Part shown: one piece after another, positions 2,045 through 21,441 of the stretch
Numbering within the stretch: position 1 is the stretch's first letter
Layout of the letters: every line of letters begins with the position of its first letter
Assembly (NCBI GenBank): GCA_001643675.2
Contig: LSRY02000010.1
Coordinates: 62,001-126,000 of the forward strand
DNA: 64,000 nucleotides
Direction of reading: 5' to 3'
Source of the DNA: Monocercomonoides exilis PA203
Taxonomy: Eukaryota > Protista > Preaxostyla
Translations under genes and position numbers: made by a program
The notes under the pieces: generated by a model
Databases searched by the model: none
Told to the model about the DNA's origin: nothing
The model's input: only the letters and a program-made list of their open reading frames with translations

Positions 2045-5000
2045 ATGACCTATTCTTCATTGGCAGATTTACTTCAAAAAAACTCGGGCATGATTATGCT
2101 TACACTTGTTTAAAAATTAACATTTAGTTTCTTTTTCACTTTTTTCCAAGGTTCAATTGATATTTCAATTTTAACAACTTGGATGCACTCTGTGCTTGAA
2201 ATTCTTTTAGACATGCACTCAAAAAAGGAATGCTTTCAAGCTCTTCACCCAAAAAATATTTTTATATCGAGTTCTGGTTCAGTTAAGCTTGATGTTCGAG
2301 AAAAAATATGTTTACCATATTATTCGCCAGAAATAATATTAGATCTCGAAAACAATAAATCTACAATTACTTTTACAGCTAAAAATGATATGTGGGCCTT
2401 CGGCTCCATATTTTTTGAATCTGCTCTTGGATACTCAACATTATCTGCTCATTCGTTTAAAGATTTTTTAAGGGAGCAATTTGCTCGGTTCAGAAATCCA
2501 AAGCGTTCTGATTTAAAGTATCTAACAGACAGAGTTTTTAATTCTCTACCATTTTATCAGTCAGACATTGTTCCACCTTCGTACGAAGTTTTTGATCCAA
2601 ATAACGCTATAAATGTGAAGAAGCACACTGGAATTCTTTCAAGTCTACCAAACGACTTTGCTCCTCTTTTCTGTAGCCTAATTCAAAGGACGCTGGATTT
2701 TAATCCTGAGACTCGTATTACTGCAGAACAGTGCATCGAATTACCAATCTTCAAACAAATAAAAAGAAAGAGTCAAATGTCTTTTTTATCAAAACAATTC
2801 TCTCATCAAAATATTCTTCCCACTTCTTCGGCATCATCAAAGCGTTTTTTGAGTGATCATTCACGTTCTTCTGTGGACTCTCTTCAGCCAACTACTGAAT
2901 ATTCGTTTCATAAATTGATACTCGATAATGATGAAGAAAAGAAAAGAAAATTTGAAATAAATGAACTTTTAAGTCTGAGCGAAGCGAGTGCAGCTGCGAG
3001 CAAAAGAAATATTGCGGAAGGTGCTGATTTGAAAAGAAAAGAAATGCCAAGTGCTTCTTCAACGAACATCACTCTTGTCCCTTCAATTACTCCTCGCTAT
3101 ATTGTCCCTTCACAAAAGCAGAACTTTCTGGTCAGACAGAAGCAGGCAACTCAACAGCCTGCGCCTTCTAATTTGAGCACCTGCAATTTTGATTCCCCAT
3201 CTGTTCCGCTTCAACGTCAGCACTCTCATTTTTCGTTCCCTCCAGCAGCAGCCATTTCTTCAGATTCTTCTCAGACTCCTCCTCATTCTCATCATTCCGA
3301 CTTTTCTGCCACACAAAAGCAATCTCATTGTAATTTGCTTTCTTCAGGCGATAAAAGCTTTCCCTCGCTTTCGAAATCATTCGACTTCGCACCTCCATCA
3401 AAGCATGTTGCTGCAAACTCATCTTCTTCAATGCCGCCATTCCCAATTTCAGATAACAGTAACTCTTTATCTTCATCCTCTTCCTCTTCCATTTCTCCAA
3501 CTTCATCTTTGAGACCTTCTTCTCCCTCCTCTCCTTTTCAATCTTCTCTTCCTTCTTCTTCTTCTTCCTCCTCTTCCTCTTTTCCTCTTCCTCTTCCACT
3601 GCCACTGCCTCTTCCTCTATCTTTTTCTGTCTCACCTTCTTATCTGTCTTCTTCTGCTTCTATTTCTTCTCATCCATCGCAGCCTCTCACTCTCCTCACA
3701 CACGAAGTGGTCAAAGAAGAAGGAAATGGATTTGTCCGAACAATAACACGACAAACATATCAAGTTCAGAGAGAAGAGAAGACGGAACAAAAGAAAAAGA
3801 AGAGGAGAAAGAAGAAGAATGCATATGACAACGACAGTTCGAATAACGATGAAGCAAAGCCAATTGAATCTGTTGATAGAAAAGATGACGTGCCTTCAGT
3901 TGAGTCAAGTGGAAGTATGGTCACTTCAACAGAAAGGAAAAAAGGAGAAGCAGAAAACGAAGATGATGGCAGAAAAGGAAAAGAAAATGAAATGAACAGC
4001 AATCCTTGTGAAGACAATCAGAAATTAGAAGATAAAAAATTGAAGGAAGAGAATGAAGATGTTTGTGATTCCGAACAAAAAGAGCAGAAAGAAGAAGAAG
4101 AGATAAAAGAGGAGAAAGAGGAGAAAGAGGAAAAAGAAGAAAAAGAATTTAAAGATGAAAAGGAACATGTTTGTGATTACGAACAAAAAGTCGAAAAAGA
4201 AGAATGTGCTGATAGTTTTGTGCATTCCGAGGCATTAACTGATCACCCGACACCATCTGAACATAATGAAGATGAAATTCCAATTGAAGCATCTGAAATG
4301 AGATGTGAAAGCGAAGACCAAAAATTAGATAATTTTGATCAAACAGAAGGGAAAGAAATGAGATATGGAGAAGAAGATGATGAATGCTGCTTAGATGCAG
4401 ATGAATGCGAAGAGAACGAAATTAAACAGCAAGACAATCCTTCTTCTGATGCATTTTTTGATAAAAATGATATTTCAGAGAAAACAAAACCCGAAGCAAA
4501 AGATGAAGATACAAAAGATAAAGATGCAAAAGATGAAAAAGATACAGAAGAAAAAGAAAATGAAACAGAAAAAGAAAAAGAAGAAAAAGATAAAGTTGAT
4601 GAAAGCGAACGAGAAGACTCGTCAGAAGACAGTTCAGATGGACAGAACGAAGACATCGAGCAAATCGAAGTGGTCGATGAATTTTATGACACGAATGTTC
4701 TGCCGGCAACTGTGCTGTCAGCGCTCAGCTCGTCTTCTCCACCCGTCTTTGTTGGAAACACACACCCTGCTTCTTCTTCTTCTTCTTCTCCTTCTCCTTC
4801 TCCTTCATCATTTTCATCATCATCATCATCATCTTCTTCTTCTTCTCATCCTTTTCCTTCTTCATCATCTTCATTGAACACTCCTCAAACTGCTCCATTG
4901 AATGCTCAATTGCCTCAGCCTCAATTTCCTTCTCCTTCTCCTTCTTTGTCTTCTCCTCGCCTTCCTTCAGATTCTTCAGTCTTCGTTTATCGGCCACTTC

Positions 5001-5638
5001 ACTACAAAACATTTTCTCCTTCTGCTTCTGTTGCTTCCTCTTCTTCACATACACAGAAATTATCACCTTTCCTTTCGGAGTCTGAAGTGACAGAAACACA
5101 TTTCATGCCAAAAATTGCTCTTGACTCGTCTTTGCCTCCTCACTTCCAGGCAAAACAAGAGCAGACTGCTTTCAGCACTCCCCATTCGTCTGCTTCCTCA
5201 TCATTTCCTCAGCCTTATTTGTCTCAATCATCTTCCACTCCATCTCATTTTCCAAATGCCACTCCAACTTCTTCTCATTCTCTCAAACGTTCTTCTGCTG
5301 CTTACTCCCCTTCAGACTCTCCTCTTCCTTCTCCTGTCCCTCCTTCTCTGACAAAGCCATCGCCAAAAAACGAACACAACAAGAATTCTTCTTCTCATCA
5401 TAATCCTCCGGCCTCTTTCTTGCTAACACCAACACACAACTCATCTGAATTTCCTGGTTCATCATCATCATCTCCATCATATTCTTCTTCTTCTTCTTCT
5501 TCTACAACTACTTCTTTATCATCTTCGTTATCATCCTCAATTCAGTCTCCATCAAATCTTCCTCCACATCGCTGTTCTTCTCAACAAACACCTGGACTGT
5601 TGAATGCTGTTTCTTTGATTCATTCTCCTTTTTCTTAA
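2045..5638 (+). CDS. Protein kinase-like (pseudokinase, C-lobe only) with long S/P-rich and E/K-rich disordered tail
   Basis: Kinase-like subdomains are visible: MHSKK-FQALHPKNIF (VIb), YYSPE (VIII), NDMWAFGSIFFE (IX), LDFNPETRITAEQCI (XI). GxGxxG, VAIK, HRD and DFG are absent. Predicted first exon 2045-2087 joins through a GC-AG intron (2088-2150) in frame with ORF 2183-5638. Confidence 0.7.
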
Positions 5639-5993: not shown

Positions 5994-8900
5994 ATGGCAA
6001 AGCCTATTTTTTGCTTCATTTGCGATGGAACAGATAACTGTATGGAATTGATTCATTTTGAATTTTTTCAGTGTTCAAATATTTCATTTTTAAGACTTCC
6101 AAATGACAATGAATGCAATCATCTCCTTAAAGAATAGCACGCCTTCAGCCGTAATTGGAGTTATTATACCACCATATGTTGATTTTATTGCTACAAGTGA
6201 AAAAATTGAGAAAGCTCTTCCAGATATTTCAAATATCATTATGAAGTCTGGAAACATTCATTTTCCTCGTTGGAACCCAACACAAGTATGAGTCATTTAT
6301 TTAATTGTAGCAATGAAGAACGGTCTTTTTTTGATTCTTTTTTGATTTCAGTTCAAACTTGACATTGAATTGTTTTGTGATGATTATGATCCTGTCTGTT
6401 GGATAGACAGCGACGTTACCGTTCTAAAGGACATTTCCCCATTTGCAGAAACTTTTTATAACAGCGGGAAGAAGTTTGCATTCCTCTCGGATCATGTTAA
6501 CCATGATTCTTCATTTCTTGCACTTTGGGAAGACGGTCCTGAGCATTGTTTTGTTCCTCAAGCTTGCTACATGTTGTTTCGTTCTGAATATGTAAAGTCG
6601 TTCTTTAATTTGTGGAAAAAAATATGGAATGATTGGATTAGTCCTTCACCTTTTTTTAATCATTCTGATCCAGCTCCTGATTTTTCTGGATCTGCGTTTT
6701 GCATAGAGCAATATGCTCTTGGACAAGCGCTTATCAGATATGAGTTAGGGGCTGTTACTAATCGTTCACATTTATCTGAGGAAGCATCTCCTTCTTCATT
6801 AGACGAAGCAACATCTTCAATTCATTCATCAAGAGATGAACGTGAAATTTCAATCTTAACTTCTTCCGACATTCGTGAACATCCAACAATTTTTAATGAA
6901 CTTAATCCGCCTCCATCTGTGCTTGTGATTAACAGATCACAGCTGCTTGTCCATCAAGAAACTGTTGCACTTGCATTGCAAATGGCAAATAGAGCAAGCA
7001 CTTCGCAACGATCAAATCATTCTCAACGAACTACAGAGGCTACTTCAGATTATCACTCAAATCAGCAGCGTTATTTAATTTTGTCACCATCGTCTCATCC
7101 ATCAAGTATTCCATTGAGCCAAGTTGATTTTTCTCCTTCATTTTCGACTAACGGAGAGAATGGGCAGATACAAATATCTTCACTTCGACAAGCGTATCCT
7201 TCTTCTTTAGTTTTGTCTTCTTCCTCGGTCATTGCATCCGGAAGTGTTGATATTCAAAAACATATAAGTTCTGCTCCATCAACTGTTTCTTTACCAACTC
7301 ATAATTCACTTTTCGTTGGGTCAGTTATTTCAATACCAAATAATCAAGAAATTGGAAGCTATTCACAAAGCGTTGAAATTGTTACTTCTTTAATACCTTC
7401 CTTGGTACCTTCTTCATATCAATTACCGATAAATGCTGGAGTCATCGAAACTGGAGAAACATTATCATCATTAACTTCGTCATTCCGTGGATTGTCGATC
7501 GGAGAAACTTCTACAAACATACAACAGCAAAAGCAGCTGCAAACAGGAGAACTTGTAAGCTCCTACAGAGGCATCTCGAGCAAAGGAGAAATCAAAACAG
7601 GTTCATCTGAAGTTCAACAAGAGCTGGGAGAGATTACCTCTTCTTATCGAAGAATTTTGTCATCAGGAAATATTGAAACGCAGAGCGCACAACAACAGCA
7701 GCAGTCAGGAGAATTCTTGACATCGTATAAAATGATCGGGGCATCCGGACAAATACAATCGCAAATTTCTGCAAAAGGATTGCAATCTGGTGAGCTGTTA
7801 ACATCCTATTCAGGACTCCAATCTTTGGGTGGTATTGAAACTTCTGCGCAAAGCAAGCAACAAACACAACAAACTGGAGCCATTTTTACATCATACCGTA
7901 AAGCAGCATCGTCTGGAGTAATTGAGACAAAAGCACAAACACAACAGAAGCAGCAGCAGCAATATGGAGAATTGACTACGTCATATCTTGGTGCTGTGAG
8001 CGGAGGATCAATAGAAACAGGAATGAAACAAAAACAAAAACAGCAAATAACTCAATTGCAACAAGGATTGCTGTTAACTTCATATCGTGCAATCGGAGCA
8101 TCAGGTCAAATTCAAACAGGAGTCACTCAGCAACAGAAGCAGCAAACTACTCAACAATATTCTGGAGAATATTTAACATCGTATCAGTCTGCTCTGTCTG
8201 CAGGGCAGATAACAACAGGCGTGACTCAATCCATTTCTCAGAAACAGCAGCAAGTCGGAGGGATTGCTACGTCTTATCGAAATGTCGGTGCGTCTAGGCA
8301 AATACAAAGCGGAGCGATTCAAAAACAGCAGCAGTCGTCTCAGCAGCAGCAATCGGGTTCTGTACTTACATCATACAGAACAGCAAGTGCAGCTGGAAAA
8401 GTCGAAACAGGAATCAGTCAAGGTCAGATTCAGAAGCAACAACTGCAACAATCCGGAGAATTTACAACTTCTTATCAAAAATTTGGTGCTTATGGACAAA
8501 TATTGACAGCAACAACAAAGCAAACTCAGCAAAAGCAATTGGGCGAACTTTTAACTTCATACAGCACAACAGGTGCAACTGGGCAAATCACGACAGGAGT
8601 GAAACAACAACAGCAGCAGCAGGAAACGGGAGGTATTGTAACTTCGTATGGAGCACTCGGATCATTTGGACAGGTTGAAACACAATCAAATTTTGGAAAG
8701 CTTTACTTCCTTTCCGTTTCAAAAACGGCTGCTGGAAAAGTCATTCAATCGAGCATTGTCTCATCATACGGTTTTCAAGGAGCTTTGGGGATGATAACTT
8801 CTGGAGTTACAACTCAATCGCAACAGCAGCAGTCTCAACAGCAAGTGGGGGAATTTTCTTCTTCTTATAAGGCCATCTCTGGTAGCGGGGCATTTGTTAC

Positions 8901-11751
8901 TGGTGGAAAGCAGCAGCAGCAACAACAACAACAACTGCAAAGTGGAGAAGTGCTGACATCTTACAGAGCTGTTGGAGCATCTGGGCAAATACAAAGCGGA
9001 GTATCTCAGCAACAGCGACAGCAGCAATTCGGAGGGTTAACGACTTCGTATCAAGGCATTGGTGCTTCTGGGCAAATTGAAACAAAAGTTTCGAAGTTGC
9101 AGCAAGTGAAGCAGTCAGGCGAAATAGTTTCATCATATCAATTGCAAACATTGGGGCAAATACAAACAGGATCTATTCAAAAGAAAGAAGTTAAGAAGCA
9201 GAAGCAATTAGGCGAAGTTCTGAGCTCATACAAAGGAATAGGGGCATCAGGCTCGATTGAAACTCAGTTTGTTGTGCAGAAGCAGTCGCTGCAAGGAATT
9301 GGAGGAGTCTTAACATCATATTCTGGGCAGAAATCGTTTGGTCAAATACAAACGCAAACAGAACAGCGACAACAACAAGTTGGGGAATTTACAAGTTCCT
9401 ACAAAGGAATTACAAACACTGGAGAGATCAAAACAGGAGCGGCTCAAAAACAACAAGAAGTCGGAGAATTGACTTCGTCTTATCGAGGAATTTCGTCTAC
9501 TGGCAACGTTGAAACGCAAATTGCACAGCAGCAGATACAAACAGGTGTGATGCTCTCTTCTTACAGAGCATCTTCAAATGCTGGACAAATTGAAACAAGT
9601 TCTTATCAACAAGCCTTCAAGCAAGGTGAGGTGCTTTCTTCCTTTTCTGGGCTGAAGGCAATTGGAGGAATAGAAAAAGAGATGTCAGTTAGATCGATTG
9701 AGCTCACTCAAGCAGTTGCCTCCTACAGACCTGTGCCAACACTCTCTGTAGGAGAGATTTCTTCGACTTCTGCTTCTTCTGCTTCTTCCTTTTATCCTGT
9801 GAATGTGGTCAATTATCCTTCGTCATATGTGCCTCCTTCACTCACTAGAACAGAGAATATTGAAACGCGTTCAACACAAAGTGGGACAATTAATGTGTCT
9901 TCTTATGGAACATCATTTTCATCTTTAAACACTGAGAACAACGCTTTACAGGGCGAAATTATTTATTCTGCAGCAAATAGACGATCAATACAGAACTTAA
10001 ATTATACTCTTCAAACATCAAGTGCTTCAAATAATCAACAAATAGAAGATATTTACAACATTTCCGATTCTTCGCGATTTAATGAAAATTCATATCCTTC
10101 TTCAGATAATTTCTACTCGCATGTTGTAACATCTTACATACCTTTGGTTCCTTTGGCTGAAGTATTCTTCTTTGAAAACTCATCTGCATTGCCTGAATCA
10201 ACTTCTGAACAGCATCAGAATTCTATCAACGACAACAGTTATGCATTGCAGTTTGATACCCGATCTCAATCGCATCATCAAAGATCGTCAGACTCCGATT
10301 CTCAGCACATAACTTCTCATCATCATCGCAATCTGACTCGCCACAGTCACAGGCACAGCCATGGCAGCGATCATAGTCACAACCATGGGCATCATCACAG
10401 CCACCACAGCCACCACAGCCATCACTCCAGCCACAACACCTCCAATCTCTCCTCTTCTCATTTCGCTGCTCCAACAATTCCTAAAGTTGTCGAATCCTCT
10501 CCAAAACTGGTGTATTCTGAAGCATCAATAACTGCACCGGCTCCTCTTCCTCCAATTTGGCCTCTGCCTTCTCCCACACCATCACCTCCACCGCTTCCTC
10601 AGTACATTCACACAAAGCCTCCTCCTTCTCCTTTGCCAATCATCTTGCCTTCTGATTCATTTCAACTGTCATCTTATTCACAACAGATGCATCTGAATGA
10701 ACACAATTCTCATTTTCAACAACAAGCTGAGCACTCATCGCATTCCCAGGGAAATCAGACTTCTCATTCCACTTCGCAAAGACATTCGTCTCGCCAGTCC
10801 AATCTTTATCAGAGCAGCACAACACAGCAACATTCACAAGCTGCCGATTTTTCATCAGACGAACGCTTTTCAGTTCTGGAAAGCGCAAACAAGGATGCTT
10901 TTGCAGCAAACAGCGAGTCATTAAAAGATGATAATGAGACAAAAGAAAGTCAATTGGTAGAAGAAGAAAGCGAAGGAGAATTATCAGCTTCTTTCTCTTC
11001 GTCTGAAAGTGATGACGAATCCGAAGAGAAAAAAGATGGAATGAATAATGTTCTGTCACATTCAAACATTTTGCCTGTTCCGTCAAATAATCTGTTAACG
11101 TTAAGCAATCCTTCATTATCTTCCTCATCCTCTCAAATTCCGTCTGCAAGATTGCTAAGCACAGTTGATCGAAAAATCTTTATTTTTGGGCCTCCTTTAA
11201 ATGCTGCGAATGACCAGGCATCTTCCATCTCAGAGCCTTCGAATGCACTTCAGAACTCTTCAGCTCAATCTTCGGAACCTGCCCCTCCAATTTTGAGAGA
11301 CGAAGAATACGACCCATTATTGACACCTGTCCATGAACATGCATTTAATACATTAGCTGCATGTTCTAATTCGCAAAATAATACAAATCGTGCTTCTTCT
11401 GCTAGCTTATCAATATCCTCTTCCTCTTCCTCTTCTTCTTCTTCTTCTTCTTCTTCTTCTTCTTCTTCTTCTTCTTCTTCTTCTTCTTCTTCTTCTTCTT
11501 CTTCTTCTTCTTCTTCTTCTTCTTCTGAGTTCTCATTCCATCAACAGCCTCCTTCTGTCCCTGCACAACCCTCACAACCAACTCCTTCTTCAGCAAGCTC
11601 TCACATTATGGTTGATCTGCTCCAGGATGCATCAGTTGCACATTTTTACAATACAAATTATTCAACAATGAGTGTATTTATGGATGGCTTGAAAGACACA
11701 ATTATTAAGCTTGTGGACAAAGATGAACATGAAAAAATAGGAAAGGAATGA
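5994..11751 (+). CDS. GT8 / glycogenin-like glycosyltransferase with a very large internal repeat insertion
   Basis: Introns 6040-6094 and 6286-6351 give MAKPIFCFICDGTDNYFQMTMNAIISLK...QFKLDIELFCDDYDPVCWIDSDVTVLKDI (DxD motif)...FCIEQYALGQAL. The GT8 C-terminal motif VAHFY appears only ~1600 aa later, near the stop. Confidence 0.75.
7405..9760 (+). repeat. Coding tandem repeat: ~24 clear plus ~3 degenerate units of G-E-x-x-[TS]-S-Y-x6-G-x-I-[EQ]-T separated by Q-rich linkers
   Basis: Examples: GELVSSYRGISSKGEIKT, GEFLTSYKMIGASGQIQS, GLLLTSYRAIGASGQIQT, GEVLTSYRAVGASGQIQS, GELTSSYRGISSTGNVET. The units are diverged at DNA level and conserved at protein level. Confidence 0.9.
11416..11526 (+). 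repeat. (TCT)n microsatellite encoding a poly-Ser tract in the GT8-like gene
   Basis: A near-pure TCT run of over 30 units, in frame. Confidence 0.95.
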
Positions 11752-12225: not shown

Positions 12226-15200
12226 ATGCCGCTTTTGCTAGTGCTAGCAATATTGCAGATAATTCGGAATGATTTTTGTAATTGTTCAAATGCTTTTCTT
12301 ACCAATGGTGAAGACGGAGCTTTCATCAATAACGCGCCTGAAAATAATTATAAAAGTACAGACTATATAAAGCAGCTTAAGCAAATAGGGTTTTGTTTCT
12401 TTTATTGTTTTTTGATTTTGATAAATTATTAAATTATTTATGTCAATTGCTTGAACTATTTTTATTCTACCGTTCAAAATAACTTATTCAGAAAACCGTT
12501 TATTTCAGGTTTTTCAGAGTTCAAACGAAATGAAAATTACAGCACTGTTGTTAAAGAGCGATTGTTCGAACATCATCCTGCCACATTGATTAAGTCTGAA
12601 GTTGTGCTTCTGAATTCATCCGCAAAATTTTCGAGTCTTATTGTTTCTCCTGTCCATTCACATGTAAATGCTATTTTCATGAAGCAATCTGCACTGACTA
12701 TGTCTTCAGTGATATTTGATTTACCAAGCGAGAACGCTGTATCTCCATTGACTTTTGAAAATGGAAATTCCGTTCTAGACAACATTTCGTTATTGCACAG
12801 GAGTTCAGATAGGCTTATTCCTCCACTGTTTTGTGGGTCAGCATCGACCGATGGAAAGTTGGGAGCTTTTTGTGTTTTAAACTCGGAGTTTTCATCATTG
12901 CAACTGTTGCACACTCCATTTTTTGGCGCAACAGCTGCATGCTCAATTACTGTGAGCTCATCTTCTTTTTTCAATGTCACATCTGCCTCAAAGGCTAAAA
13001 TTAGTTTTCAAAAGGGATTTTGCTATTCATTTCTGAGTAACTGCTATTTCGACCATGTACCAGATGCCATCTATGGGGGAATTGTGCGTTCAATAAATGT
13101 GCCTTCAATATCTCTCAGGGTATTCAATTGCTCGTTCAAAAACTGCCGTCACTCTGCAAACAACAACATCCAACACGAAGGCAACGAAACAAATCCAAAA
13201 AGGATGGAGAGTCTATTAATAACAGAAAAAGGAAATCATTCGTTTCTGCTATGCGAATGGCAGAATGCAAGCGCAGCAAATGGCGGAGCAATATATGTTT
13301 CATATGCGACTGAAGCCACAGTCTCGATTCGGAGATGCACTTTCAATTCGTGCATCGCAACAGAAAGTTTTGGAGGGGCATTGTATTTTGGAGGCATAAG
13401 TTCATTTATATTGGAAAATTCTTCTTTCAATGAATGCCAAGCTAAATTAGAAGGAGGAGGATGCTATGAGCGTTATATGTCTGCACAGCCATATATTTTT
13501 GGATGTGATTTTAGTATGTGTTCTTCAAATCGAGCTGGTGGAGGTGTACGAATTCAACTCGATGTTTCATCCAACATTAATTTGTCACAAAGAGAAAACA
13601 ACATTGAAAGCCAGTCAGATATTATTGATTGCAGCTTCATTAGATGCACAATAACAAAAGATGCAGGCGGAGGATTATGCATGGCTCCTCCTGGTTTAAC
13701 TGAAGTAAGAAGCTGTTTATTTTATCAATGTTCAGCATCATTCAGAGGAGGATCATTTCATTGGAATGGAGAAACTTTAAAATCAACAAACTTGGTATTA
13801 TTTTATTTTCATTTCTATTTTGAAAGTATCTGCACACGTGAAGATCCGAATGGTATAGATGTTGAAATTACAGATAACTCGAGTCATTTGAGACAAAATC
13901 CGCCTCCATTTGTGGAATCTTTCACAACGTGCACAACGCAATCTGTTTATCTCAATTATGCTGAAGGAGTTAGATATGCAACAGGATGGATGGAGCCATT
14001 TTCCTTGAATCAATTTGTGGGGAATGATGGTCAAGACTTGATTGGCTCTGTTTGTAATGACGAATTTTCTCCATGCAGAACAGTGCAAAAAGCTATTTCT
14101 TCACTTCATTCCATTTCTTTATCAACAATTACTCTTTTGGAGGGATTAATTTCGTCAGAACCATCTCCACTCCATCTCGATTCCAAGACACTGAAAATAA
14201 CGGGATCTTCTAGACAAAATGTGCAGCTTGCAACAGACTTGCTCCCAGCTGACTCATCTCTGTTTTCAATTTCTTGTGGAACGCTTTATGCGCTTTCCTT
14301 CAGTGTTGATCAGAACTCAACAACTGTTCCAACTCCGACTGTATTCCAATCTGATTCGATTTCTTTGCTCACAATCAGCAATGTTGCAATTTTTTCATCG
14401 AATTTCAAAGAAGAAATAGAGGTTTCATCACATGTATTTGATGTTTGTCTCAAGAAAGTAGAAATTAGAGATCTTCTTATCTGTAATATAACAACATCTG
14501 AAAGTCTATTCCATCATTCTTCATCTTCGGAGGCAGAAGATAGCCATCTGAGCAATATTACTGTTGCGAATGTTACTCTCTTAACAGGAAGTGGACTCAT
14601 TCTATCAATTCGCACTGCTTTAAACGAACATCTGAAGATGATGAACAACACAATTGAGAATTGTTCATGTATTTCTGAAAATGGAGGAGGGATAGCAATC
14701 TTTCTCGATCATGAGAGTAGCTCGCTTCAGATTGGATCACAAAGTTCTTCCACATTATTCACGAGCTGCCATTGTGGTGGATTTGGAGGAGGGATATATA
14801 TTGAGATGGCTGAAGGTGCAACTGACTTCTGTCTGTCTGACATCACATTTTGCAGGTGCAGCGCAAATAATGGAGGTAACAATGTTTTCATTAATGGAAG
14901 TACTTTGTCATCTGTTTGGCTGAACAATGGAACATTGAATATATCATTTGAGGAATCCTCATCAGATGATCTGATGTGTTTCGATCGACTCATTCCGATT
15001 TTGAATCCATTTTCACTGAATGCATTTCTCGTTCCTTTTAATGCGCCTGCACATGTAACTGGAGATCCATCGCGAGGATTGGATTCATCATTCTGTGGAC
15101 TTTCCTTTTTGCCTTGCCTGACCATAATGCACACCGTTCGCACGTTATTCCCAACATCTTCACCATTGATTGTCATTGATGACTGCCTGCAAGTTGATGA

Positions 15201-18200
15201 GCAATTAATTGTGTCACAACACCCATGGAATATCTCTGCGATCGAGAAGGGATTACAGGTTTCAATTCTTGCTCCTTCAGATTTTTCTTCTTCATCTTTT
15301 GTGACTGTGACAGCAGGTGCTTCGTTTAACAACATTTGTTTTGGGCTTCCTTCTGCATTACAATCAGCCTCTTTCTTTATCAGTTGTTCAACATCTTCAT
15401 TGTTATTGATTAATTGTTCCATAGTATTCGAAGTTATCTCACAAGGCTCCGCTGTGGAATATGGATTTGCAGATATTGAAGAAGGTGGAATAAAAGTGGA
15501 GAACTTTGAGACAAAGAACGGAGCGGTAATACAATCAAAATCGTTCATAAAGTGTCATGGATTGAATGGATTTGCATATTTCGAGAATTGTAGATTTTCT
15601 GGATTCAAAAACATAAATGGAAATGGAGGATGCATATTCGCAGGATGGAACGGAGGGCAAACTGGAGTAGCGAGTGAACTTATGATAGACAATTGCAATG
15701 TGAGTGAGTGTTGCACAGAAGGAAGTGCAAAATGCGGAGGAGGAGCACATATTTCACTAGGAGCTGGCGATGGTCTTGTCGTGAATGGAAGCAGTGTGTT
15801 CGAAGGGTGTTGTGCAGGGAAGTTGATTGAAGACAAAGGAAAAGGAGGAGGATTGATGATTGGGATAGAGAGCGAAGAAAGTATTCTAAAGTTGGATGAG
15901 GGTGTGGTATTTTCGAAAGTTAAGAAGAACTGGGCATGGCTGGGGAAAGATGTGTTCGTGAAGTGTGAAAATAATATTTTGCTGAAAGATATTGTGAATA
16001 GTTCGACGTTTATGTTTTTTGACGGAAGGGTTACGTCACCTGAAGATACGATGTTATATGGAAGTGAAAATGGAGCAGAGGATCACGCAATTCCTCTTTT
16101 CGTGTTTTTTGCTTCGCTTTCAAGTTCAGCATTTGTCGATGGAGCAGAAGGGGCAGATCACACGCATTGCGGATATGAGCTATTTCCTTGCGGTTCTGTG
16201 AGTTATTGTGTGAACAATCGAATATCGAATGTGGTTGGTCTGGTTGAAGTTTTATCTTCAACGTCAATTTCTGAAGAAATGTCGATTTCTGCAATTCCGC
16301 TCATACTCATGATTTCGCAGCACATCGAAAAAGCAACAATTACAGTTGTTGAAGGAGATAAATTTACTCAAGATGCATTTGTTGATTGCTCGACAGCTTG
16401 CTCTTTTTCAAATTTTTCGTTTCACCTTCCGTCTGCGTTTGATTCATCAAGAAAAGCATTTCTCCATTCCACTTTTTCGCTTGCTCTTTCATCGTGCTCT
16501 ATTTCGTTTGCATTTTTGAATAATGCATCTGGGACTTCGGTTGGGTACTGCATTATCTGCGCGGAAGGAGGTGAAGTGGAGCTTGCAGGGTTTGAGATAA
16601 ATCAGAACATTTCATTTTCGTTATCATCATCATTTATGCTTTTTGAAGGATGCCACTCGGTAAAGATGATTGATTGTCGGATTTTGGGAGTTGAAAAGAA
16701 AGAAGGCGATGGAGGGAGTTTGTATTTAGGAGGATATGGAAGCAGAGAAAGAGAAGGAAGAGAGGAAGTTTTCGAGGTGCTGATTGAGGGTTGCACATTT
16801 TCATCGAGCTGTACAGGAGGAGATGGATCGAGAGGAGGAGGAATTTTGTTAGAAGTGAATAAGGAAAACAAAGTGAATATAAGTGGTGTTGCGTGTGAGA
16901 GGTGCACAGTTCCTAGCGGAAACGGAACTGATGAAGGGAAAGGGCTCGGAGGAGGGTTGTTCTTGGAACTGGAGAATGGAGCAACAAATTTTGTATTGGA
17001 ACAATTGAGATTTGACCAGTGTTTAGCATGGAAAGGAAAGAATATTTTTGTGAATGGAGATCACCTGAATGAAATTGTCAATGAACAACACTTTTGCTGG
17101 AATTTGAGTGGTGATGAGTTATCGTCACTAGAAGAAATATGCGGATGGGAGAGATCGACGACTGGGGTGGGATATGTGATTCCTATGGTTGTGTTCTTGT
17201 GGAATAATCTGTCTGGAAATGGGTTTGTGGATGGGACAGCTGGAGCAGACTTCAGTGGATGTGGATATGAAGTTACCCCGTGCATGACAGTGGATCAGAT
17301 ATTTTCTGTTCAATTCCCTCCAAATTCACTCACTTCACCAACTTCTATAACACTCATTCAGTCAGCTTCAATCAATAACCCGATTTCGTTTTCTGCATTT
17401 TCCGATGCGCCTTCATTGACCACTCCATCGGTATTGATGGAAGGACTATCGAATAATACAAATGTTTTTGCATGCAGTGCAAATGTCACTGATGCGGCAA
17501 CCATTTGTTCAACAGTTCAACTATCGTTTTCTGATCTGAAATTTATTCTTCCAACAATGTCAGCTGATGGCATATCTTTTGTTTTGTTTTCTGCTGCAAC
17601 ATCTTCACTGTCAGTTTCTCACTGCTCTTTTGTATCTAATGCGACAGTTTCCCAGGTGGCAGTCTATCCAACTGTTCTGAATGTTGTAAGTGGTGGCGCA
17701 ATGCTTAATCATGTATTTATCGCTGGCTTTTCGCTTTCAGGAGCATTCCTGCTTCTTGGATCTTCTGTATCAGTTGTAAGTGTGGAATTTCTCAGTGCTG
17801 CTTCAATAAATGTGACTGGAGCAAGTATTATAAGCACGAATTCTGATTCAAGTGTTATCATTCCATTGAATCATCGAGGCAATTCGGGAAGGATAAATAG
17901 CAAAACAGCAATCACAATCAGTTGCTCGAATTTTTCATTTATTACTCGGGAAGATGAAGGAGCAGGAATTATAAGCAGCAGTGGGTTTGGGGAGATAGAA
18001 TTCATTGTGAACAAAAGCAATCTGGAAAAGTGTGTGAGTGAGGGAAGCAAAGAAGGCGGAGGAGCAATGATCTGCTTGGAACATGAATATTCCCATCTGA
18101 CAGTGGAAGGATGCTCATTTGTTTGGTGTGCATCCTCGACAGTTGAGGGAAGGGGAGGAGGAATGATGATCAACTGCCAGAGCGAGGATGGGATATCGAG

Positions 18201-21200
18201 TTCAGGAATTGGAGAGATTGGACTTCTGATAAAGAATGATGTGTTTGTTGTGAACAATGCATATGTTGGAAAAGACATTTTCATCCAATGCGAGTCAATA
18301 ATGGAGCAGATCAATGAAACGTTGTTCTCACTGGACTTCAATCAGACAGCGCTTCAGAGCAATAACTCAATCTGTGGAAGTGACAGAGTGGTATTTGATG
18401 TGGACTTAATGGAATATATTCGGTTTTTCAAGGGAGAAGCCATCTTTGTATCGGAAGGGTTCGAGGACAGTCGTTTGTGTGGATCGCAAACCAATCCGTG
18501 TCGTTCTATTTCGTGCGCATCCTCTCATGTTGAACCAGGATTTAGAAATAGCATTTGGATTAATGGCTCGGCAGCTGTTGATGAAGAGACTGCACTTTCG
18601 AATTTGCGATTGGGCTCATCACTGAAAGATGATGCTCTGTTGAACTTTTGCGAATCAATCCCCTTCAACAATGAAAGCAGAGGAATTATTTGCTTTTCCG
18701 AAGAGTGTGTTGCTGAGAGGTGCAAGTTTTTGTTCAACATTGAATTTGCATGCAAGCACCCGGCAATTTTGGAACAGATAAATGGCTCTTTGTTGATTGA
18801 TTCGTGTTATTTTTCATGCCAGTCCTCAGTCTGTTTGAATTCAAGTCTTGCTATTGTGAAAAGCGGAGTATTTGTGATGAATGAAGGATTTATCAACGGA
18901 GTTCAAATGATGATAGCTCCTTTGTTGATTTTTGAGGGAGCTTGCTCAGCTGAACTGATAAATGTCACTTTTGGCGATCTGAAACTCGCGAGTAGTGCGA
19001 TTGTTTCAAGTGTTTATTCGCGTGTAATTATATCAAATGCTGTTTTTGAAAATTCAACAGTTGCAAGCGGATGCTTTATTTGTCTTAGCAACAATGAAAT
19101 TTCAAGTATTTTTGCTACAGATTCTCTGGAAAACAACAAATTGAGCGACTTTGCAAAGGGATCACAATCAATTTTTATTTCCTCATTTGTGAACATCACC
19201 TCTGATGGGATGGATGGAAGTGTTGTAAAATGCGAAAGTGGCTGCGACGATCTTCAGTTGACCAACTGCACATTCAGCCAGTGCTTTTTGAATACACCAA
19301 AAGGATCTGCTGTTAGCTTGAATAACTTGAAGGAAGCGTTGATTGATTCATGTTGCGTTTTTGGAGATTTGGATGATGAAGGAAACAAGAAGAATGAAGA
19401 GTCCAAAAGAACAAAAATAAAAGAAGAAAATGATGTGTGCAAATGGAATGGATCTGTCATCGAGATAATAAACTGCAGCGTTTATGTGAAAGATTCAACA
19501 ATCGCAAATTCGTCGAAAGGCGGGGTGGGAATAGAACGTTCAAGTGTGAAGCTCGAAAAAGATGAGTTTATGAACAACGACGGAAGAATAGAGAAATTCC
19601 GATCAGCAAGGAGGAATGTTGTGTGCCAAGGCAGTGGAGAACTGAATGTTGTGAGTTTGAAGGGAGGAGATGGATGGGAAAGAAATACGTCGCTGTGGAT
19701 ATTGGACGAAGGATGCACGCTGGAAGGAATAGCAAAAGAAAGAGAATCACCATTTTTCATCCCGAAGGTGGAGAGTGTGTCGTCGGAAAAGTCAGGGGAG
19801 AAGGTGGACATTATGTTCAGAGGATCGATTCTCCTCCCTTGCAACCTCTCATTCAAAACAGTTGCAGCAGTTGGGGATGAGGAAGTGGTTGAAAAATATT
19901 CGTTTGTTGCAAGCGGTTTCATATCAGAGGAAGAGGTGCATGGGTCTGTTCCTGCCAAGACTATTGAAGATGTGCCAAGTGAAGCAGATGTGAAGGTGTG
20001 TATTTTATTTGGGAAAGTTGATAAACCATCAGCCACTGATTCTTTCATTCTGAAGAACAGAAGTGCAATTGAACAAAGTGGAGATGAACAACTTGTTGAA
20101 GGAGGAAAAGAAGGGAAATCTTATTGGTTGCTGATTGTTATTGTGCTCGTTGTGATATTATTGATTGTTCTTGTTGTATCAATTATTTTTGCTGTTCGAT
20201 GGAGGATGGCAAAGAATGAAGCGAAAGATCTGAGAGAGATTGTGAATGATACAGTGAGGAAGGATCCGAAAGCATTTGAGATGGTGACGATGGAGATGTC
20301 ACCTGAGGAGCAGTGGCAAAGAGCCGAAAGAGAGGCAGAGAAAAAGAATGAGGAAAGAATCAAAAAGAGGGTGTATGAGAAAAGCTTGGGTCACTCTGAG
20401 TCATCAGAGCACCTTCTTTCTGAGAGTGGATCGACCGAATACATTCTGGGAAAGGACTCAGATAATATTCCCGATTGGGCATTAGAAAAAGAGGAGGAGG
20501 AAGAGATTCAAAAGAGAACTCCTTCACCATCCATTTCATCCACTTCAACAACAGACACTTCAGACACTGACACAACGTTTGTTCGATCTGAAAGTCTGTG
20601 CCCAACCACTTCATCCATGTCGAATCTGGTGGATGCAATGGCCTGCTCATCTCCTCATGAGAAATTGATTGTGGATTTAAGAGATTCTCTGTTCATGCTG
20701 TTGCACGGAAGGAATGCGAAGAAAGAGATGACGATAGGCACTCTTCAGGAGAGAGAAGTGACAGCTGCTCAGATCCTGTTCTGGGTGGCCAATCTTGCAA
20801 TCCACTCCTTTGATGAAATGGAGAATCCTCTATCTTCTCTGGAAAATCTCAGTCCTCACATTGTGCTGTTTTCAGAACACATGGTTATCTGCATTGCCAT
20901 GCACTCCGACTGCTCGTCAGATGATAGTTCAGACTCATCATCCATCTCATCATCGACCGTTGTCACATCTACCAGTGATGACGATGATGACAGAGACTCT
21001 CTGCCCTCATCCGCCTTTGAAGATGAGGATAGTTTCAAAAAAGAGTGTCTGAGGTGGAAGGCGCCAGAGTTGTTGATAAACAAGAAGATGGGAGCAACAA
21101 AGGCTTCTGTTTCGTTTTCCATTGGGATGATGTTGTTAGAATGTTTGATACTGGAGATTCCATTTTCTGATTATGAGGCTGAAATGGCTGGAAGGAAAAT

Positions 21201-21441
21201 AAGTGAGGGGCAACTTCCAAGTTTGATGAAAGTGAACGGATCAACTTATTTAGGGGTTGTTCAATCGTGCTTGTCGCCAAATCCGTTTGATAGGTGCACA
21301 TTGATTGGGCTTAAGAGGGAGTTTATCCAGCGTTTTCCAGCAGGCGCTGTCATGCCAACAGTGTCAGATGCTCTTGACTTTGAAGAAGATGCAAATGTCG
21401 ATGGAAATGAAAGCAGTTGCACTTATTGTTCATCGCTATAG
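12226..21441 (+). CDS. Giant type-I membrane protein: signal peptide, Cys-rich right-handed beta-helix (Pmp/pectin-lyase-like) ectodomain, single TM, TKL-like pseudokinase tail
   Basis: Signal peptide MPLLLVLAILQII; intron 12390-12491 joins in frame to ORF 12451-21441. GGAI/GGG and FxxC motifs recur, with five C-x5-PC-x-[TS] modules. TM is WLLIVIVLVVILLIVLVVSIIFAV. The tail contains LRWKAPELL...SFSIGMMLLECLILEIPF. Confidence 0.8.

Follow-up and report, generated by a model that had tools for sequence, protein, structure and literature searches.

The gene at 5994 to 11751 of the forward strand in a 64,000-nucleotide stretch of Monocercomonoides exilis PA203 DNA (contig LSRY02000010.1, positions 62,001 to 126,000; this whole stretch is called the window here) raises the question of what a glycosyltransferase might do with 26 copies of a short repeat unit lodged inside its own catalytic domain. 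A sequence-only reading took the product for a GT8 enzyme of the glycogenin type whose self-glucosylated acceptor segment had been amplified, so that repeat tyrosines could seed many glucan chains, and offered as a second option that the repeats are a built-in glycosylation substrate or scaffold. It is now clear that the gene is the most extreme case in a GT8-clan family of eukaryotes that is apparently undescribed and is separate from glycogenin, and comparison of its arrays indicates that their constant residue is Ser or Thr rather than Tyr. The built-in substrate is the best explanation of these features, and in its present form would involve self-glycosylation on Ser at many sites.

The gene comprises three exons, opens with the ATG at 5994 and yields a product of 1878 amino acids (aa). 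Both introns are short, AT-rich and common to the Blattamonas orthologue at identical sites, exon 2 being 48% identical to that orthologue, and exon 3 (6352-11751) is a single open frame of 1799 codons with one weak donor-like site only. The parts are these (GC, guanine plus cytosine):

5994..6039, + strand: exon 1, which encodes the first strand and the D-G-x-x-x-Y nucleotide-binding loop; it aligns with positions 8-26 of the family profile and shares its N-terminus with the Blattamonas orthologue.
6040..6094, + strand: intron 1, 55 nucleotides (nt), GT..AG, phase 1, interrupting a Tyr codon, 22% GC; conserved in position and phase in Blattamonas.
6095..6285, + strand: exon 2, from helix 1 to the family motif WNPTQ; matches residues 17-79 of relative P0003 at 48% identity, E 5e-19.
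6286..6351, + strand: intron 2, 66 nt, GT..AG, phase 0, with an in-frame stop, 27% GC; same position in Blattamonas and Streblomastix.
6352..6738, + strand: catalytic core in exon 3, with KLD, DxD, DHV, PQAC, a Trp/Pro-rich subdomain and IEQYALG; Pfam GT8 E 7.6e-4 (below cut-off), family profile 191 bits, 86 homologues.
6400-6414, + strand: core motif WIDSD (the DxD), aa 96-100, with DSD at aa 98-100.
6553-6573, + strand: core motif PQAC.
6703-6723, + strand: core motif IEQYALG, aa 197-203.
6919..6954, + strand: extra core strand with a near-invariant family Arg (55/56 rows); matches orthologues P0001 and P0003.
6955..7464, + strand: Ser-rich leader of the arm insert, by composition.
7465..9762, + strand: array of 26 units, G-E-x-x-[TS]-S-Y-x6-G-x-I-x-T with Gln-rich spacers, 24 with Tyr and 2 with Phe; period 27-40 aa, mean 30.
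9763..11595, + strand: non-repeat low-complexity remainder, His-rich, Pro-rich and acidic, with poly-Ser at 11419-11526.
11596..11751, + strand: closing GT-A segment by the family C-motif profile, with a conserved Asp (11614), the predicted Mn-binding His (11641) in VAHFYN, the C-terminal helix and the stop.

From IEQYALG to the closing motif is a distance of 1630 aa, close to the roughly 1600 aa first estimated. The His segment that completes the GT-A domain lies at 11596-11670, with VAHF near aa 1841-1844 and the His at aa 1843, and is the best match of the family C-motif profile within the window. It is taken as the true closing segment because the final 60 residues of the protein align with the C-terminus of a close relative, P0004 (44% identity over 41 aa, E 6e-9). 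The GT8-like layout described for the N-terminus is likewise present with all of its named motifs, and relatives' models place it in a GT-A fold of the GT8 clan. The suggested joining of 5994-6735 to 11600-11751 was sound in that the VAHF end completes the fold, but it omits the core strand at 6919-6954 with its near-invariant Arg, which a private insert of about 55 aa separates from the rest of the core. Neither a signal peptide nor a membrane helix is predicted, and so the encoded enzyme is probably cytosolic.

What sort of transferase this is can be approached through models of two full-length relatives, P0010 and P0003, the exons of the M. exilis gene having been searched separately. The short-insert member gave a predicted local distance difference test score (pLDDT) of 89 and a predicted template modelling score (pTM) of 0.87, and the Blattamonas orthologue, KAK2961338.1 of 540 aa, gave a confident core, an insert (241-464) of pLDDT <50 that is predicted to be disordered, and a post-insert segment of about 89. 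Against the PDB the top nine rows for the short-insert model were all GT8 or GT24 (LgtC, GlyE, UGGT, Gat1, LARGE1, WbbM and glycogenin, Z 14.9-16.5), and the Blattamonas model found glycogenin (Z 17.0), LARGE1 (16.9), LgtC (16.8), Gat1 (16.5) and UGGT (16.3); the scores do not separate these enzymes, identity is 10-17%, and the aligned regions take in the post-insert segment. GT34 and GT77 rank lower (xyloglucan xylosyltransferase, Z 11.7). The models thus show a predicted GT8-clan GT-A fold in which the parts of the chain before and after the insert combine into a single domain carrying the DxD and His ligands. By sequence, Pfam Glyco_transf_8 (PF01501) scores 19.6 bits on the exon-3 part, under its cut-off of 24.3, and 26 of 65 members match it weakly (best E 2e-6). 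A search of PDB sequences with the single core gave chance matches only, and sequence and profile searches of the PDB gave no glycogenin match, the best sequence-profile match being GlyE (E 0.007). The metal ligands are kept through the family alignment (the two Asp of DxD in 54/55 and 50/55, His in 43/45), as in the Mn site of Gat1, and the enzyme is probably a metal-dependent, retaining nucleotide-sugar transferase.

Identity with glycogenin does not hold up, the fold matching LARGE1, LgtC, Gat1 and UGGT just as closely. The N-[SA]-G donor-sugar motif is absent, the family PQAC aligning with LNSG of a GT-A structure (Q in 58/60, C in 48/60). After the His the consensus is [FYTC]-Y-[NS]-x-[NF]-Y, with Tyr at +6 in 70 of 92 sequences and not the Lys of glycogenin, the phosphate-binding Lys of its post-His Lys-Pro-Trp. 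The M. exilis chain ends 36 aa past the His (family median tail 27 aa), the tail being one domain helix in both models, whereas glycogenin continues through a linker to a C-terminal 34-residue region that binds glycogen synthase (PMC9188544). Since the NSG motif, the post-His Lys and the synthase-binding tail are all absent, the family is separate from glycogenin within the GT8 clan. Conserved cysteines also occur family-wide in two active-site motifs, the PQAC just described and FCIEQ (6694-6723; C in 55/59).

How widely is such a split enzyme distributed? The same site is interrupted in about 140 eukaryotic homologues, which come from oxymonads, a malawimonad, amoebozoans, bdelloid rotifers and many unassigned transcript contigs. 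Searching 50%-identity representatives with the exon-3 core gave 86 proteins, 68 of them with E <1e-10, and further members came from a profile search and a metagenome scan. With the whole of exon 3 as query and matches filtered by length, no protein was returned. Named members are Blattamonas and Streblomastix, which hold the closest named relatives of the window's gene, Gefionella okellyi, Protostelium nocturnum, Stenamoeba stenopodia and bdelloid rotifers, and the remainder are mostly contigs of 1-2 kb, intronless and unassigned. Exact-pattern scans of GTDB genomes and IMG/VR found no prokaryotic or viral member. The closing motif Asp-x6,8-His-x-Tyr follows EQYALG and the insert in all complete members. 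The insert lies, as first read, in the interval that holds the acceptor arm of glycogenin, and behind EQYALG it runs to 59-482 aa in complete members as against the 1630 aa of M. exilis. NCBIfam gave no match, neither Pfam nor NCBIfam has a model dedicated to this family, and no description of it was found in the literature, Pfam, NCBIfam or Atlas; neither was a publication found on glycogenin with Monocercomonoides or on a self-glycosylating serine-rich GT8.

The family tree is a quick, midpoint-drawn version with no true root and with eight rows left out, and so it is not used to order events or to name a donor. Inside the oxymonad-containing group lies a clade (P0045, P0043, P0050 and P0033) that is apparently dead, judging by a broken DxD and no His segment; P0045 (L042:44-3802) runs in the order EF-hands, dead transferase, C2 and caspase-family domain, and in P0043 the dead transferase is followed by two C2 domains. 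Protostelium nocturnum encodes an intact member with a short insert, P0028, fused to a CBM48 glycogen-binding domain, BTB and BACK, and also an array-bearing paralogue, P0015. Bdelloid members from Adineta, Rotaria and Didymodactylos (P0026, P0117, P0121, P0128, P0131) are fused to BTB, and those placed on the tree cluster with amoebozoan sequences, which makes gene transfer possible. Other fusions (P0010, P0022, P0027, P0060) involve RING, an F-box-like N-terminus recognised by eye, SHOCT and pentapeptide repeats, several of these domains being ubiquitin-ligase modules. In Streblomastix (L004:1813-12758) the orthologue is followed, in the same orientation and off the contig end, by a Gln/Asn/Ser-rich open frame of more than 3300 codons when TAR codons (TAA and TAG) are read as Gln, with SSY 9 times against 1.6 expected, and the annotated 195-aa protein is probably truncated. 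A CBM48-bearing gene stands two genes downstream of the Blattamonas orthologue (L003:15096-16473), probably by chance.

In the M. exilis insert the array spans about 770 of the 1630 aa, less than half, the rest being Ser, His, Pro and acidic low-complexity sequence, so that the repeats do lie between core and VAHF as first described but do not fill that space. Of the roughly 25 units then counted 26 are found, although the exact motif fits only 9 and a relaxed form 19-20; the pattern G-x3-[TS]-S-Y-x6,7-G is present 20 times, whereas 2000 rounds of shuffling gave 0.03 (maximum 1). Between units 63% of fourfold-degenerate sites differ, 66% being expected at saturation, and six positions (G, S, Y, G, I, T) are nevertheless held, so that selection acts on the protein, as had been suspected. 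The near-invariance claimed for the Tyr is also real (24 Tyr and 2 Phe), but once units are delimited only by the G/G/I/T around them the Ser is at least as invariant, with Ser in 20 of 20 and Tyr in 19 of 20 in-register units. Searched on its own, the array has no Pfam match and noise-level Atlas matches only (0.81). Its GC of 43% is like that of coding DNA (introns and intergenic DNA are at 20-27%), and this, the selection signal and the presence of arrays in relatives' intronless contigs argue that it is translated.

What is it, then, that the arrays keep? Among 63 members, de-duplicated at 80% core identity, 29 have a motif array; in 27 of these the top trimer includes Ser or Thr, in 16 it includes Tyr, and 13 have no Tyr in their top motif. 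In 42 pooled representatives [ST]-S-aromatic reaches 237 occurrences where 45 are expected (z 35) and S-aromatic is enriched with z 19, whereas T-aromatic is depleted (18 against 46), Gly-aromatic is depleted too, and aromatic-S is at chance; the enrichment of the one order, the depletion of T-aromatic and the lack of enrichment in the reverse order make the motif directional and Ser-specific. The unit itself differs from lineage to lineage. TSY or SSY is used by oxymonads and two other groups, SF and SW by a 19-member clade (one member of which has no Tyr anywhere in its insert), GSL by Gefionella, and [YF]SG by Protostelium, with [YF]TG in a very similar sequence where the hydroxyl is kept; one lineage has N-[LIVAT]-S-G, and another VASS[GA] without any aromatic residue. 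The N-x-S of one clade's arrays was considered as a set of N-glycosylation sites and set aside, a sister sequence having no Asn. Inspection by eye showed no column of the core that follows the difference between SY and non-Tyr arrays in both of the non-Tyr clades. In the nearest relative (L002:70-978, 74% identity), whose organism reads TAA and TAG as Gln and whose database entry P0001 is incomplete, being broken off at such codons, SSY and SSF alternate within a single array. Across the family, therefore, Ser/Thr is kept and the place of Tyr can be taken by Phe, Trp, Leu, Ile or Ala, which tells against Tyr as the general acceptor, although Tyr may serve so in SY-type lineages, the M. exilis gene included.

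The account that we favour, tentatively and at somewhat under an even chance, is multi-site self-O-glycosylation on Ser. The loop, which is anchored at both ends next to the active site, would be a built-in acceptor. The enzyme, or its partner in an oligomer, would recognise a short sequon ([TS]-S-Y in M. exilis) and transfer sugar to the Ser hydroxyl, the aromatic residue serving for recognition; each lineage would have amplified its own sequon to give many sites per chain, 26 in M. exilis. Ser is preferred as acceptor because Ser/Thr is the only side-chain hydroxyl common to all arrays, and self-modification because the enzyme itself is the simplest reader of a lineage-specific motif placed inside it. 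An insertion site fixed in all complete members, models that complete the fold across the insert, and five relatives with a broken DxD that have neither His segment nor array all support this account. Several points count on the other side. The degenerate relatives form only one or two clades, and so the correlation between array and active site is weak. Ser is the commonest residue in the loops, so that its presence in the top motifs is partly expected, and 34 of the 63 members, all with a His segment, have no detectable array, which is therefore dispensable for the family's activity. SY-type lineages hold Tyr over Phe strongly (24:2 in M. exilis, and 14:1, 17:2 and 27:1). The glycosylation step we infer from sequence, as we do the equivalence of the loop to the glycogenin arm, which comes from motif order and residue numbering. 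The acceptor Tyr195 of glycogenin does sit in an acceptor arm (PMC12267440). A warning comes from Toxoplasma Gat1, a glycogenin-like enzyme with a 90-aa insert and no self-glycosylation (10.1101/764241).

Perhaps, instead, nothing is transferred to the loop. A sticker-and-spacer or docking array, serving condensates, fibres, binding of glycogen or another polymer, or recruitment of partners while a separate substrate is glycosylated, is possible though on balance unlikely. Its composition (Gln 19%, Ser 15%, Gly 13%, Thr 10%) is like that of prion-like low-complexity domains, the hydrophobic residue is interchangeable as in stickers, and the array-less half of the family often has BTB, BACK, RING, SHOCT or CBM48, so that targeting or oligomerisation could there be supplied otherwise. 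Such an array would not predict the strict order of Ser then aromatic or the depletion of Thr-aromatic and Gly-aromatic, however, and leaves unexplained both the aromatic-free arrays and a position always within the catalytic domain and never terminal.

The reading with which this locus began, a multi-primer analogue of glycogenin in which repeat Tyr are glucosylated and seed many alpha-glucan chains per polypeptide, now looks improbable. It draws on the acceptor-arm position of the insert, on Tyr in 24 of 26 units despite saturated synonymous sites, on SY being the commonest array type with the widest spread on the tree, on glycogenin tying for best fold match of the Blattamonas model, and on the one family member with a CBM48 domain. 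The strong preference for Tyr over Phe inside SY lineages is the chief argument that it still has. Yet members with an intact DSD can carry long arrays having 0-3 Tyr, the nearest relative alternates SSY with SSF, the fold is tied with four other enzymes at low identity, and the QAC, post-His and tail differences given above all separate the family from glycogenin. Physiology is compatible with a glucan role, M. exilis having probable glycogen granules (PMC6759080) and old cultures that up-regulate glycogen synthesis (PMC12308965), and glycogenin is reported from fungi and animals only (10.1101/764241), although it is also listed for one cryptomonad. The link to glycogen is circumstantial, and the wider proposal that the family consists of self-priming transferases with up to dozens of Ser sites inside the catalytic domain, each lineage with its own sequon, that prime glycogen or another cytosolic polysaccharide in metamonads, malawimonads and amoebozoans lacking glycogenin must be called doubtful.

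Regulatory motifs, whether pseudo-substrates filling the acceptor pocket or targets of a kinase or of a nucleocytoplasmic O-GlcNAc or O-fucose transferase, would be equally well served by a location beside the active site and by constant Ser/Thr, but an outside enzyme would need to follow many lineage-specific sequons and 26 copies seem excessive for a switch, so that this is quite improbable. Neutral low-complexity inflation typical of the genome, or an insert that is spliced out, has very little in its favour, since the similarly inflated neighbour at 2183-5638 and the non-repeat half of the insert are outweighed by amino acids conserved over saturated synonymous sites, coding-like GC, the 1799-codon frame with its one weak donor-like site, and relatives' arrays in intronless contigs and transcriptome proteins. 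That neighbour encodes a kinase-like protein, and the one on the other side (12451-21441) a giant surface protein that crosses the membrane once and has a kinase-like tail; neither showed a link to the gene.

Few glycosyltransferases are known to self-modify, and glycogenin does so at a single Tyr. Different motifs repeatedly amplified at one spot of a GT8-like enzyme, in a deep-branching eukaryotic family, provide a natural series of enzyme-sequon pairs. If the array is an acceptor, this would be a new type of cytosolic multi-site O-glycosylation, and if its product primes a glucan it would bear on how glycogenin-less protists start glycogen granules.

Set beside known systems, the family has in common with glycogenin (GYG1, GT8) a cytosolic GT8-clan GT-A fold (Z 15-17, root-mean-square deviation about 3.5 A over about 200 residues), the DxD and His ligand set, and hydroxyl-bearing motifs between the D/E-Q helix and the His strand. 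In contrast, identity is 10-14%, the family has QAC for NSG and Tyr rather than Lys six after the His, lacks the linker and the 34-residue synthase-binding tail, and has an extra Trp/Pro-rich subdomain; and where glycogenin has a single acceptor Tyr the family has many motifs with constant Ser/Thr. The arm holds 24 Tyr in M. exilis, and many relatives' arrays hold none. Gat1, the Skp1 alpha-galactosyltransferase of Toxoplasma and Pythium (GT8), is similarly a cytosolic protist enzyme with a single catalytic domain (Z 15.7-16.5), interrupted in Toxoplasma by an unstructured insert, but high similarity was not found (profile E 0.09-0.18, 14-15% identity), its insert shows no conservation, it modifies Skp1 in trans and not itself, and it is reported from SAR and archaeplastids, not amoebozoans. 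The bacterial GT8 enzymes LgtC, GlyE and WbbM, the xylosyltransferase domain of LARGE1 and UGGT (GT24) score equally in structure (Z 15-17), but all act in trans on glycans or proteins, GlyE on a serine-rich repeat adhesin, and none of them is known to have an internal acceptor-like array. Prion-like domains of the FUS type, with [G/S]Y[G/S] motifs, are alike in being disordered Ser/Gly/Gln/Tyr-rich repeats, whereas the M. exilis array is directional (Ser before the aromatic), has a 30-aa period and a second element, G-x-I-x-T, and lies inside an enzyme.

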